A stretch of DNA of 64,000 bases from Macrostomum lignano (Eukaryota), in NCBI GenBank assembly GCA_002269645.1, contig NIVC01002915.1, positions 6,966 through 70,965 on the forward strand. The letters run 5' to 3'. Below, in pieces: positions 50,701-53,700 of this stretch. Made by a program: the position numbers and the translations under genes. Every line of letters begins with the position of its first letter. Position 1 is the first letter of the stretch. Below the pieces are notes generated by a model, which ran no database searches, was not told where the DNA came from, and worked only from the letters and a program-made list of their open reading frames with translations.

Positions 50701-53700
50701 ACCCCATGCGCGCGCTTGAATCTGTCTGCACCCACCACCTCTTTGCTAACTACGTCAGCCTAGCTCTCAAGCGAGCAACTTTTCTCACTCCTACAATCAA
50801 ACACTACTGCCTCAGTTATTAAAGATATCGCAGAGCCTACTTCAAGTAAAACAGCAAAACGCCATCACCCATTGTCACACGTAAGTGGGCTACGGGTCGT
50901 TTGGGCATATCTACGGGCATATTGTATCGTCATAGACAATGACTAGTTTTAGTCGCTGTTGGCTTCGACTCATTGATGTTGCTCAGATGCTATGATGTAG
51001 AAGCTCACAAGGAATGCCGACAACTTCCAGCTTACGCATTTGCTTTAAAAATTTCCTTAGAGATTTACAATTTTGACTGTACAAACCCAAAAGCTCCTTT
51101 TGCCTTCCAAAACAGCAGAAAGGTAGCTCGTAGCCAATTATAATTGGTCAATTTCAATCTCATTTCGCATTATTATTATCTAGCGTCAGAAAAGTGCATC
51201 ATACAGAAGATGATTTAAGCTTATCGAATCGGGCGAGTGTTACGAATATAAACAATTTTGTGATGCAAATATATTTGTTGCAGTAATAAAACCGTTACAA
51301 AATGCAGAGCGTAGTCAAAGTTGCTGTTAAAATAAGCATAAAAATTATGAATCAATTTTTGGAGAAGCCCAACTCCTTCAAGAGACCAGCATCCAGGTAC
51401 TTCTTGACGATGCTGTAGAAGCACTTCCTGGCGCAGTCGTCATCCTCGATGTCGCACTGGCAGTCGGCCGGCAAGTCGACCAGGACGCGCAGCTTGGCCA
51501 GGGTGGCAGTCAGCTCGGCAGGCTTCAAGAACTGGGCCAAGAGGTCGCAGTTCTGGTCCTCGATCAGGCACGGCTTGAACCCAGCCTCGACGCCCTGGAT
51601 GGCAGTCTGTGCAGCGGCTTTGGCGGTCTGAAGTTTGAACATTTCAATGCACAAAGGGTCAAGTTTGTCACAAGGCACAAGCCACAAGTTTTTCAAGGCA
51701 ACGCCTGAAAGCATTTCTAATAATTAGATCGGTAATAAATGCACTGTGCGAACCTCTGCATCGCCTCCCATGGACAGAGATATCCAGGCCGCACTGACGG
51801 CAGAGGACTTCACCAGGTAGTTGTACACGCAGCCGCGCAGACACTTCGCCTCGGAGAGGTCGCAGCTGCACCGATCGGTCAGTTCAATGCTCCGGAAAAT
51901 CTTAAGCACGATCCGGCCTCGTCTGAAGTCCAGGGAACCGTCCGGAGGGCAGTTGAAGTCTTTCAGGATGCAGTCTTGCAGTGACGCCGCCAGCCCCTCG
52001 TCTGCCAAAGACTCCAGGTGCACCAGGTGCGCCGAGCGGCGATACAACGCATGTGCCATTGGCGAGCCAGAGACTGGCTCCTGACCAAGGAAGCAAGCAA
52101 GAGGGCCGTGACAAACCAACATCTCTCACTCGTGCATGCATCAGTCTAGAAAGCAGTTTATTTAATAGCTAGAATAAAAAATGACCAGAAAATACTCACA
52201 GTATCATTAAAGCCGACAGCGATAAGCAAGAACAGAGACAGGTATCCGCGCATGGTCACTGATGGAGCACCTTGGACTAGAGCCTAAAAACTGCCGGTGT
52301 ACAAGCGTAGATATTGACTGGAGCGGCTGACTGTGCGTGGCTGGCTGACTGCTGAGTGGGCCAGTTGTATTTATACACTTTCCTTAACGATAGAATCTTG
52401 CGTACTCCAACTGCTCGCTCAAATACAGCCCCCCCCATTACCTGGTGAAAAACCCAGAAAAAACCCTGCTGTCTGCTGAATAAAAGCTTAGCTTAGCTAG
52501 TCTCACCTCTGTGCCCTAACACTGTGTTGGAGCTTCTCTCTGCGCTGATTGGCTGGCGGTCTCGCGTGAAGTGTAAGACTTTTCTACCCTTGTCGCACCC
52601 ACCCCAAAACCATTCTTTGAATTGCCCTCTAGCTGATGGGCTATTGGTTATACGCTCGTAGACAACTTTTGCAATTGGTCAGCCAGAACCAGTTCTCGGT
52701 TTGCCGGTTTGGCGGAGCGAAAGATGCTCTACAAACTGAACATTTTTACCTTCTCAATCAACAGAAAATAAACTATAAAAACTATTAAAAAAACTTGCTC
52801 ATTTTGGAACGGCAGAGGTTCGTTTTGAAACAGTTTAAATTAACGAACTTGTTTTTAACAGACCAGTAATTTAACAGACGTATAGTTTTTACGATCTCGA
52901 TGTACTTTTGGGACGAATAAGTAACTACGAGACTTTTTACTTTCTCCAAAGTCCTCTTGGCTCAGAGACACGAAATCAGGGTTTTCTCTTTGTAAAATTA
53001 ACACCCGGACTTATTAATACTCATATATTATCAGCGTTGACCACTGTAAAAAATGGTTTTGCTAATTTGAAGACTTTTATATTACTGTCAGTAACAAAGG
53101 AGTGTTTTTTATACACATAACACAAAGTACTCATTCCTTTTTTCAAATGATTCGTCGATTTTAACATTCATTCGACAGACTACGAAGAGCTGGACTATGC
53201 TGAGATTATCCTAGCAAACGCTTCGTCTCCGACTGACTCGAGCGTAGAGGTGTTGGCTAAGCGAGGCCAAGGCTACATCAAGGAGCACTTCTGGAGCGTG
53301 GAGACGTTTCGGGTAAGAAATCAGCTGGTATTCTGACTGACTCACAAATAAAACTACTGTAAATTGATGTGAAAATAAACCTGATTTAACTTTAATAGAT
53401 TGCTCGATTTGCCGGCGTCAGAAAGTCCACGTTCTATCGCCGACGCTTGTCATTTGCTGAGTTTGAGGTGTACGGCTACCCGAGAGTCTGTATGTATCCT
53501 GTTGGAATAGACTGAGTATTCCGTAGACTGAGTATTCCATAGACTGAGTATTCCGTAGACTGAGTATTCCGTAGACTGAGTATTCCATAGACTGAGTATT
53601 CCATAGACTGAGTATTCCGTAGACTGAGTATTCCATAGACTGAGTATTCCGTAGACTGAGTATTCCGTAGACTGAGTATTCCGTAGACTGAGTATTCCGT

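Follow-up and report, generated by a model that had tools for sequence, protein, structure and literature searches.

The locus considered here raises the question of whether a small three-exon coding unit, set antisense within an intron of a very large gene, is a gene in its own right, and, if it is, to which family its product belongs and what that product may do. The DNA is from Macrostomum lignano contig NIVC01002915.1, and the whole 64,000-nucleotide stretch that was analyzed is referred to as the window.

Gene model and host gene

The minus-strand gene is composed of three exons (Table 1) that together encode a 218-residue protein. The exon lengths of 54, 327, and 276 nt are each divisible by 3, which makes both introns phase 0. 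The TATAAA box-like element is a putative promoter element, and it keeps its position in each of the three copies of the nested gene. A preliminary description of this stretch had proposed a TATA box, a signal-peptide exon, and two repeats each on a phase-0 exon of its own, and every one of these features lies where it had been placed. An intron is also present in the paralogues at the place equivalent to intron 1, and the position of intron 2 is likewise kept. An Rfam search of the window returned no match.

Table 1. Positions in the window of the nested gene, its coding modules, and the host-gene kringle ORF
Feature	Position	Strand	Description
TATAAA box-like element	52370..52375	-	122 nt 5' of the ATG at 52253
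Exon 1	52200..52253	-	54 nt; M1-T18; putative signal-peptide exon, followed by a GTGAGT donor
Intron 1	52081..52199	-	119 nt; GT..AG; phase 0
Exon 2	51754..52080	-	327 nt; 109 codons; E19-E127; variable linker and six-Cys module 1
RR of the exon 2 linker	52036..52041	-	RR32-33, within ALYRR/SAH
Module 1	51829..51972	-	C55-C102; begins CILKDFNC
Intron 2	51628..51753	-	126 nt; GT..AG; phase 0; between the two modules
Exon 3	51352..51627	-	273 nt (91 codons) and TGA; T128-N218; six-Cys module 2
Module 2	51421..51570	-	C147-C196; begins CLIEDQNC
ORF with kringle exon of host gene	49294..49743	+	Pfam Kringle E = 1.5e-9; ORF residues 58-134

The spliced product is 100% identical (218/218 residues) to P0005, which is deposited as PAA54405.1/PAA74457.1 with the GenBank title "hypothetical protein BOX15_Mlig026050" and corresponds to UniRef A0A267FMX1. 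The gene model is already in the public record under this title. The Mlig_3_7 annotation was built from a genome-guided RNA-seq assembly with StringTie, TACO, and TBONE (PMC5730564), and the agreement of the exon model with this RNA-seq-guided GenBank model implies a spliced transcript.

In two other genomic copies (L002 and L004), the annotation has a gene of ~4,000 codons that spans the nested gene on the other strand. The host product is 4468 residues long in L002 and 3920 residues long in L004, and has Kringle, Lectin_C, F5_F8_type_C, and Fibrinogen_C domains in both copies with PKD and REJ domains additionally in L002. By these gene calls, the nested gene occupies, in antisense orientation, an intron of a polycystin/REJ-like gene of very large size (kringle, C-type lectin, PKD). 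The nested gene had been described as hidden in an intron beside a kringle exon; the antisense nesting and the kringle exon are real, but the gene had already been annotated. Genomic copies 1 and 2 of the nested gene have three exon differences, all of them synonymous, and a 27-nt indel in intron 2, and the dN/dS between copies 1 and 3 is 0.25. A 2.2-kb deletion truncates one of the three copies, so not every copy is maintained.

Six-cysteine modules and family members

The protein contains two ~65-residue modules with the pattern C-x6-C-x26/28-C-x-C-x6-C-x3-C. This pattern had been read from both repeats in the preliminary description, and a count of the spacings (6, 26, 1, 6, 3 in module 1 and 6, 28, 1, 6, 3 in module 2) confirmed it. 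BLASTP aligns module 1 with module 2 at E = 4e-7 with all six cysteines in register, and the pair derives from an internal duplication in which the duplicated unit was the size of an exon. A regular-expression scan of the six frames of the window found no further occurrence of the six-Cys pattern. No further copy came from tblastn either, as its weak match at 37007-37159 (E = 0.046) in the window contains a stop codon, is of low complexity, and was discarded.

Exhaustive phmmer analysis of 1.84 billion representative proteins matched P0001, P0002, and P0003 only. A profile search added P0004, and all of the matches are M. lignano proteins with the exon plan and cysteine framework of the window gene. 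The phmmer query was a single sequence and not a profile, which means that very remote relatives could be missed. A module-level profile search of a 5.8-billion collection gave 25 candidates and recovered only the near-identical copy P0001. Among the proteins searched, the six-Cys proteins form a multigene family that is small, is confined to M. lignano, and comprises at least three diverged paralogue groups. The paralogues are ~25% identical to the window protein. The three-exon, phase-0 plan of a putative signal-peptide exon followed by one module per exon is found in the window gene, P0002, and P0009. A dN/dS of 0.25 (dS 0.92) was calculated for P0002 versus P0009, and values of ~0.25 indicate purifying and not positive selection overall.

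The spacing 6, 26-28, 1, 6, 3 is present in every six-Cys module of the family. The residues C, N, C, C, R, C, and Y are invariant in an eight-module alignment, and the family framework is [RK]-P-C-I-[LV]-x3-N-C-x26-28-C-x-C-x6-C-x-R-x-C-x-Y. C4 and C5 are jointly lost from module 2 of P0002, P0006, and P0009, and the four-Cys module 2 of P0002 and P0009 is spaced C-x6-C-x27-C-x12-C. Judged from the alignment, the joint loss would be compatible with a C4-C5 bond, and it would be equally compatible with C3-C5 and C4-C6 pairing followed by re-pairing of C3 with C6.

The family members bear on the reality of the gene. The truncated genomic copy and the failure of the database searches to find homologues in any other species are what would be expected if the model were a non-functional annotation artifact or transcriptional noise within the intron. 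Against this reading, divergent paralogues at another locus still have the same exon organization, predicted signal peptide, and cysteine framework under the selective constraint calculated above, the intact copies differ by synonymous changes only, and AlphaFold returns confident helical models. Base composition also separates the coding sequence (GC 0.59, GC3 0.77) from intron 1 (GC 0.41), the introns together (GC 0.40-0.41), and the flanks (GC 0.42). Paralogue conservation effectively refutes the artifact explanation, the likelihood of which is negligible. We conclude, with a probability of roughly 80%, that Mlig026050 is a functional, transcribed protein-coding gene that is nested antisense in its host and belongs to an orphan family of putatively secreted two-module six-Cys proteins.

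Predicted fold and comparison with known families

AlphaFold was used to model the full-length protein and a single module on alignments of only 6-8 sequences, and the models are of moderate confidence. The full-length model is all helix with a pLDDT of 73 and a pTM of 0.72, and the block means for residues 50-200 are mostly 80-90 (range 74-91). The single-module model has three helices and a pLDDT of 70, and there is no beta strand in either model. Each module is predicted to consist of three helices that would be held by three disulfides. C1 would lie at the end of helix A with C2 in the next turn, C3-x-C4 would occupy the loop preceding helix C, and C5-x3-C6 would fall within the opening turns of that helix. 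Both modules probably pack together as one helical globule.

Foldseek comparison of the full-length and single-module models with the PDB returned only generic helical bundles and GPCRs (E ≥ 0.38, TM ≤ 0.28). Pfam analysis of the window protein and four paralogues gave sub-threshold noise only (DUF7545, E = 0.17; Tospo_nucleocap, E = 0.11), and sequence and profile searches of the PDB gave a single chance match to a papain-like protease (E = 1.7). Across Pfam, the PDB searches by sequence and by profile, the hhalign comparison with saposins, and Foldseek, no membership of the six-Cys proteins in a known family could be detected. The suggestion that this is a lineage-specific, helical, and unrecognized family has held up, with paralogues found only in M. 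lignano, an all-helical AlphaFold model, a spliced transcript model, and no clear match to a known family.

UniRef/UniProt automatically names the paralogues P0002 and P0009 'Saposin B-type domain-containing protein'. If this name were right, the family would be a highly divergent branch of the saposin-like proteins (SAPLIPs) that acts on membranes or lipids like saposins, NK-lysin, and amoebapores. Saposins are likewise small secreted all-alpha modules with three disulfides, often in tandem in one precursor, and the window protein is all-helical in the model, disulfide-rich, and predicted to be secreted. The four-Cys module 2 of P0002 and P0009 bears a superficial resemblance to the initial two thirds of a saposin B domain, the spacing of which is C-x2-3-C-x~27-C-x~10-C. 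However, none of the models SapB_1, SapB_2, and Saposin matched the protein or the four paralogues in hmmscan at E ≤ 10, and the same Pfam scan detects control saposins at ~1e-14 for SapB_1 and ~1e-12 for SapB_2. Single-sequence and profile searches of the PDB found no saposin despite the many saposins there, and no saposin structure was among the Foldseek matches. The module and full-length alignments were compared by hhalign with human saposins A-D, the sequences of which were validated as SapB_1/SapB_2 by Pfam, and the probability was 0.1-0.2%. The complete saposin arrangement is C-x2-3-C...C-x~10-C...C-x5-C with nested C1-C6, C2-C5, and C3-C4 disulfides, in contrast to C-x6-C-x26-28-C-x-C-x6-C-x3-C here. 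Saposins have four or five helices whereas three are predicted per module in this family, and the C-x-C...C-x3-C cluster is absent from saposins. The saposin B-type label is unsupported by Pfam, PDB, hhalign, and Foldseek, and a saposin-like identity is quite improbable. The Cys framework bears out the earlier remark that the spacing is unlike that of saposin.

The plant nsLTP/2S-albumin proteins are also helical, secreted, and lipid-binding and have a C-x-C motif. They differ in having eight cysteines with an adjacent CC, a single domain, and a distribution limited to plants, and there was no sequence or fold match to them.

Secretion and possible functions

A classical signal peptide combines a positively charged n-region, a hydrophobic h-region, and small residues at -3/-1. 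The N terminus has the hydrophobic core LSLFLLIAV with a 9-residue Kyte-Doolittle mean of 3.1, a heuristic indication of a signal peptide. An equivalent hydrophobic N terminus is present in all paralogues, and the window protein has no further hydrophobic segment. A cleavage at AVG/F would agree with the -3/-1 rule. The product is predicted to be a secreted, acidic protein of ~22 kDa with a pI of about 5.1.

A pro-region ending in a dibasic site had also been proposed for this protein. The ALYRR/SAH sequence is present as described, but RR32-33 is not conserved and the segment is mostly absent in the paralogues. The canonical expectation for a prohormone or pheromone precursor would be removal of the signal peptide, a convertase cut after RR33, and release of the modules as signaling peptides, with conserved dibasic sites on either side of the bioactive unit. 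The RR does follow a ~19-residue segment downstream of the predicted signal peptide, and water-borne small helical disulfide-rich pheromones are known. Aplysia attractin and the Euplotes Er pheromones are secreted by aquatic invertebrates and protists, and have three helices and three disulfides in ~40-60 residues. They differ from the window protein in their Cys spacings and in being single-module proteins, where the two modules here are predicted to be fused via a long helix in a protein of ~22 kDa, and the PDB searches gave no sequence match to them. The RR adjoins a ~10-residue insertion unique to the window gene (it ends in the first R of the pair, and the paralogues mostly lack it), and the paralogues carry a dibasic site neither at this position nor between the modules. 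No dibasic site separates the modules of the window protein either, and AlphaFold joins them by a continuous long helix (residues 96-121) into the single packed globule. The non-conserved RR and the missing segment leave pro-protein processing unsupported, and the chance that the gene encodes such a precursor is slim.

A secreted, cysteine-rich product (secretion being predicted) of an expanded and divergent family might also be an antimicrobial or toxin-like effector from epidermal, pharyngeal, or gut gland cells. The defensin/scorpion-toxin motif has a C-x3-C on a helix bonded to a C-x-C on a beta strand, and both elements are present here, but they occur in reverse order, six residues apart. 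This reversed order, and models that have no beta strand, do not fit the cysteine-stabilized alpha-beta motif. The mature protein is acidic and the paralogue pI values range from 5.0 to 8.3 with none strongly cationic, ~22 kDa exceeds the size of typical antimicrobial peptides or knottins, and Pfam and the PDB gave no match to a toxin or antimicrobial-peptide family. An effector function of this kind is very unlikely.

A third proposal is a reproductive secretion, in which the product would be a prostate or seminal-fluid protein passed on at mating. A lineage-restricted multigene family of predicted secreted proteins, with paralogues as divergent as these, has the expected character. Two M. 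lignano studies point the same way, with many unannotated prostate-limited secreted transcripts described in one (PMC5977470) and fast evolution of reproduction-related genes in the other (PMC7336406). On the other side, the dN/dS values indicate purifying and not positive selection overall, and the four family gene IDs are absent from the supplements of the seminal-fluid screen and the comparative RNA-seq study. These IDs are absent from the supplements of all M. lignano papers searched, but those papers may use other transcript IDs, which makes the absence of gene IDs weak evidence. No expression site for Mlig026050 was found in the M. lignano literature and supplements searched by family gene IDs, and full-text literature searches with the four gene IDs, with Macrostomum and saposin, and with Macrostomum, cysteine-rich, and signal peptide returned nothing on the family. 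A seminal role is unlikely, less so than a precursor or an effector.

The functional analogy that we favor is with the insect chemosensory proteins (CSPs, OS-D) and odorant-binding proteins (OBPs), which are soluble, secreted, helical, disulfide-stabilized carriers in expanded and fast-diverging families. CSPs consist of one domain with six helices and four cysteines (C-x6-C-x18-C-x2-C), and the six cysteines of OBPs are spaced in another way. The C-x6-C first pair is common to CSPs and the six-Cys module, and only that pair coincides. The taxonomic range of these carriers is insects, as opposed to M. lignano here. No Pfam OS-D or PBP_GOBP match was detected, nor did Foldseek match any of the CSP or OBP structures, of which the PDB has many, in keeping with the earlier observation that the spacing is unlike that of an odorant-binding protein. 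By this analogy, the window protein would be released with a glandular secretion and, in soluble form, would bind or carry either a partner protein or a hydrophobic ligand, with surface and specificity varying among the paralogues. Such an extracellular role is a guess drawn from small disulfide-stapled all-alpha extracellular proteins, and a doubtful one. A slightly better, still tentative, case can be made for the wider proposal that the module is a new disulfide-stapled three-helix fold without relatives outside Macrostomorpha. The fold would have arisen de novo or diverged beyond recognition, and it may serve flatworm-specific carrier or signaling proteins for lipids, pheromones, or mating-related cues, for example.

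Invertebrate genomes commonly contain orphan families of secreted cysteine-rich proteins, and the finding of another is not very surprising. What is new is a two-module six-Cys family with an exon-per-module plan and without a Pfam model, a solved relative, or a fold match in the PDB, together with the result that the automatic 'saposin B-type' label on two of its members does not stand. For genome annotation, the locus cleanly illustrates how a gene with a putative promoter of its own can lie, on the opposite strand, within an intron of a giant polycystin/REJ-like host. For protein science, the module may offer a new helical scaffold that is small and rich in disulfides. For the biology of Macrostomum, the protein is a candidate glandular secretion product in a species that allows in situ hybridization, RNAi, and transgenesis.

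Gene model, copies and host gene

GT..AG splicing of window positions 51000-52800 gave a three-exon minus-strand gene encoding a 218-residue protein. Both introns (119 and 126 nt, GT..AG) are phase 0 because all three exons are multiples of three. The 18-residue product of exon 1 has a hydrophobic core of the signal-peptide type. Exon 2 encodes a linker containing ALYRR/SAH followed by module 1, which is CILKDFNC-x26 and a 14-residue cysteine-rich end, and exon 3 encodes module 2, which is CLIEDQNC-x28 and a similar 14-residue end. A TATAAA element is located 122 nt upstream of the ATG. 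The modules align with a BLASTP E = 4e-7 and all six cysteines (C1-C6) in register, and a six-frame search of the window turned up no further instance of the pattern. The GC3 of the coding sequence is 0.77, compared with GC contents of 0.40-0.41 (introns) and 0.42 (flanks). Re-reading and splicing confirm every detail of the preliminary description of a three-exon, phase-0 gene with a TATA box, a signal-peptide exon and two six-cysteine repeats.

Coordinates of features in the window
Feature	Position	Strand	Details
Nested gene, exon 1	52253-52200	minus	54 nt
Nested gene, exon 2	52080-51754	minus	327 nt
Nested gene, exon 3	51627-51352	minus	273 nt + TGA
Kringle exon of host gene	49294-49743	plus	Pfam Kringle E = 1.5e-9
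Non-LTR retrotransposon, apparently intact, main ORF	38410-41652	minus	1080 aa; Exo_endo_phos endonuclease, RVT_1, RNase H
ORF1-like frame of non-LTR retrotransposon	41649-42602	minus	317 aa, just upstream of the 1080-aa ORF
Minisatellite	1-2432		23-bp units
Minisatellite	3632-4859		23-bp units
Minisatellite	17887-18920		20-bp units
Minisatellite	43584-44781		20-bp units
Minisatellite	59643-60628		39-bp units

A cluster look-up showed that the protein is identical across all 218 residues to P0005, deposited as GenBank PAA54405.1/PAA74457.1, 'hypothetical protein BOX15_Mlig026050g1/g2 [Macrostomum lignano]' (UniRef A0A267FMX1). The gene had been called hidden, but it is already annotated, though unnamed. 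In reverse complement, the window corresponds exactly to part of contig NIVC01002915.1 of assembly GCA_002269645.1. The annotation of this assembly was built on RNA-seq reads assembled under genome guidance with StringTie, TACO and TBONE (PMC5730564), so the deposited model implies the spliced transcript on which the preliminary description depended. The family identifiers are not mentioned in the literature full text or in the supplements of the M. lignano papers searched, and no expression or proteomic data for the gene were found in that literature.

The assembly contains three near-identical copies of the gene, as expected from the substantial redundancy reported by its authors (PMC5730564). 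Between copies 1 (the window) and 2 there are three exon differences, each of them synonymous, and a 27-nt indel in intron 2. Copy 3 carries a clean 2,183-bp deletion (contig L004, 10348/10350; equivalent to window 49727-51909) that takes out exon 3 entirely along with the remainder of exon 2; mid-exon 2 now abuts sequence from the 3' edge of the region containing the host kringle exon. This deletion explains the 77-residue 'partial' protein P0001 (Mlig018204g1).

On the contig of copy 2, the annotation places a 4468-residue product on the opposite strand, spanning the nested gene, with F5_F8_type_C, Kringle, Lectin_C, PKD, Fibrinogen_C and REJ domains; a 3920-residue product lacking PKD and REJ matches is placed likewise on the contig of copy 3. 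Together with the Pfam Kringle match in the window, these calls support the proposed antisense nesting in the intron adjoining the kringle exon. For the window's own contig, the annotation lists no host gene within 10 kb of the nested gene in either direction, although the kringle exon is present; an annotation gap or a broken copy may be the cause. A plus-strand ORF at 57749-58975 contains a 14-bp tandem repeat (58102-58741, ~46 copies) that is open in two plus-strand frames, encodes Thr/Ser/Pro/His-rich 14-residue repeats and may belong to the host gene as a mucin-like coding repeat. The sequence just before the repeat resembles a C-type lectin (12 residues, then NNIQCD further on), and Pfam called no Lectin_C in this ORF at E <= 0.01.

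Elsewhere in the window, a 9.3-kb minisatellite (19562-28836; 30-bp units, ~309 copies, 93% match) has several open frames on both strands and is the source of many long spurious ORFs. The window is also rich in further minisatellites, which are listed in the table. The GC content of the non-LTR retrotransposon region is 0.58-0.60, richer than its surroundings.

Paralogues and coding constraint

Exhaustive searching of 1.84 billion representative proteins with phmmer returned three matches to the window protein, and all relatives found by phmmer and profile searches are M. lignano proteins, which bears out the proposed lineage-specific family. The paralogues are Mlig029205 (P0002/P0006, 193 aa), Mlig032940 (P0004/P0008/P0009, 192-219 aa) and A0A1I8G7C1 (P0003, 174 aa). 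They share only 23-28% identity with the window protein, together with a hydrophobic N-terminus, two modules and the cysteine framework. The eight-module alignment has the consensus [RK]-P-C-I-[LV]-x3-N-C ... P-x-x-C-x-C-[DN]-x5-C-x-R-x-C-x-Y, with C, N, C, C, R, C and Y invariant. C4 and C5 are both lost from module 2 of P0002, P0006 and P0009, which hints that the two are bonded to each other or lie inside one disulfide cluster. A0A1I8IJ90, a 1369-residue UniRef 'RNase H domain-containing protein' in the same 90% identity cluster as P0003 (P0003/P0007), is probably a chimeric model in which a family member has been joined to a retroelement.

P0009 (Mlig032940g4) and P0002 (Mlig029205g3) are encoded in tandem on the same strand of contig L003 (2069-2796 and 10001-10740, ~7 kb apart), not nested in a host gene and with an LTR-retrotransposon pol gene in between (4517-7624, minus strand, 1035 aa; RVT_1, RT_RNaseH, Integrase_H2C2). 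Both consist of three exons, one for the signal peptide and one for each module, separated by phase-0 introns at equivalent positions, and the exon-per-module architecture is conserved in the family. The Nei-Gojobori dN/dS of 0.25 (dS 0.92) for this pair indicates purifying selection on a real protein. The nested gene is an expressed gene model with coding constraint, and a non-functional transcript is extremely unlikely.

The dibasic site of the proposed pro-region, ALYRR/SAH, is present in exon 2, but RR32-33 adjoins a ~10-residue segment absent from the paralogues, which have no dibasic site at this position or between the modules. Convertase processing is therefore unsupported as a family feature, though it may occur in this one member. 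A prohormone or pheromone precursor is a quite unlikely identity for the product.

Known families and predicted structure

With the cutoff relaxed to E <= 10, Pfam still gave no family match for the window protein or the paralogues, and no PDB relative was detected with the single sequence or either family profile. Two paralogues bear the UniProt label 'Saposin B-type domain-containing protein', and the saposin relationship was therefore tested directly. When the two family alignments were compared with human saposins A-D (sequences verified as SapB_1/SapB_2 by Pfam), hhalign gave probabilities of 0.1-0.2%. Module 2 of the labeled paralogues has four cysteines (C-x6-C-x27-C-x12-C), and the label probably arises because its spacing looks like that of the N-terminal two thirds of a saposin. 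A divergent saposin is improbable. The window protein did not qualify as a saposin-like protein, a chemosensory or odorant-binding protein, a plant non-specific lipid-transfer protein or a defensin-type protein. It matched no known family, and the domain stands as unrecognized.

The AlphaFold2 model of the full-length protein, computed from a six-sequence family alignment (mean pLDDT 73, pTM 0.72), is all-helical (residues 49-58, 70-82, 96-121, 126-148, 154-161, 163-177 and 190-206). Ten-residue pLDDT means over residues 50-200 are mostly 80-90 (range 74-91), and the first 34 residues, which contain the RR site, score below 50. A single-module model from the eight-module alignment has three helices (pLDDT 70). 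Both models agree with the helical protein first proposed, and the product is predicted to adopt a helical fold. Foldseek searches of PDB with the two models gave only generic helical matches (E >= 0.38, TM <= 0.28). Mapping the cysteines onto the helices puts C1 where helix A ends and C2 in the turn that follows; the loop leading to helix C carries C3-x-C4, and the first turns of helix C carry C5-x3-C6. Each module would contain three disulfides, and the two modules would pack into a single globule of a presumably secreted protein. The structural and genomic interpretation of the gene is supported.

Possible function and significance

Tentatively (probability about 0.3), the product would be a binding or carrier protein that acts extracellularly in a glandular secretion, an assignment drawn by analogy with small disulfide-stapled all-α secreted proteins and from the divergent surface and conserved scaffold of the paralogues. 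A seminal-fluid protein is unlikely. An antimicrobial or toxin is quite unlikely, given the acidic to near-neutral pI (5.0-8.3) and the ~22-kDa size.

Orphan secreted cysteine-rich families are common and this gene has already been annotated, which makes the novelty smaller than first expected. What remains new is an undescribed two-module, six-cysteine helical family with no Pfam or PDB relative, together with the correction of the automatic saposin label on its paralogues.
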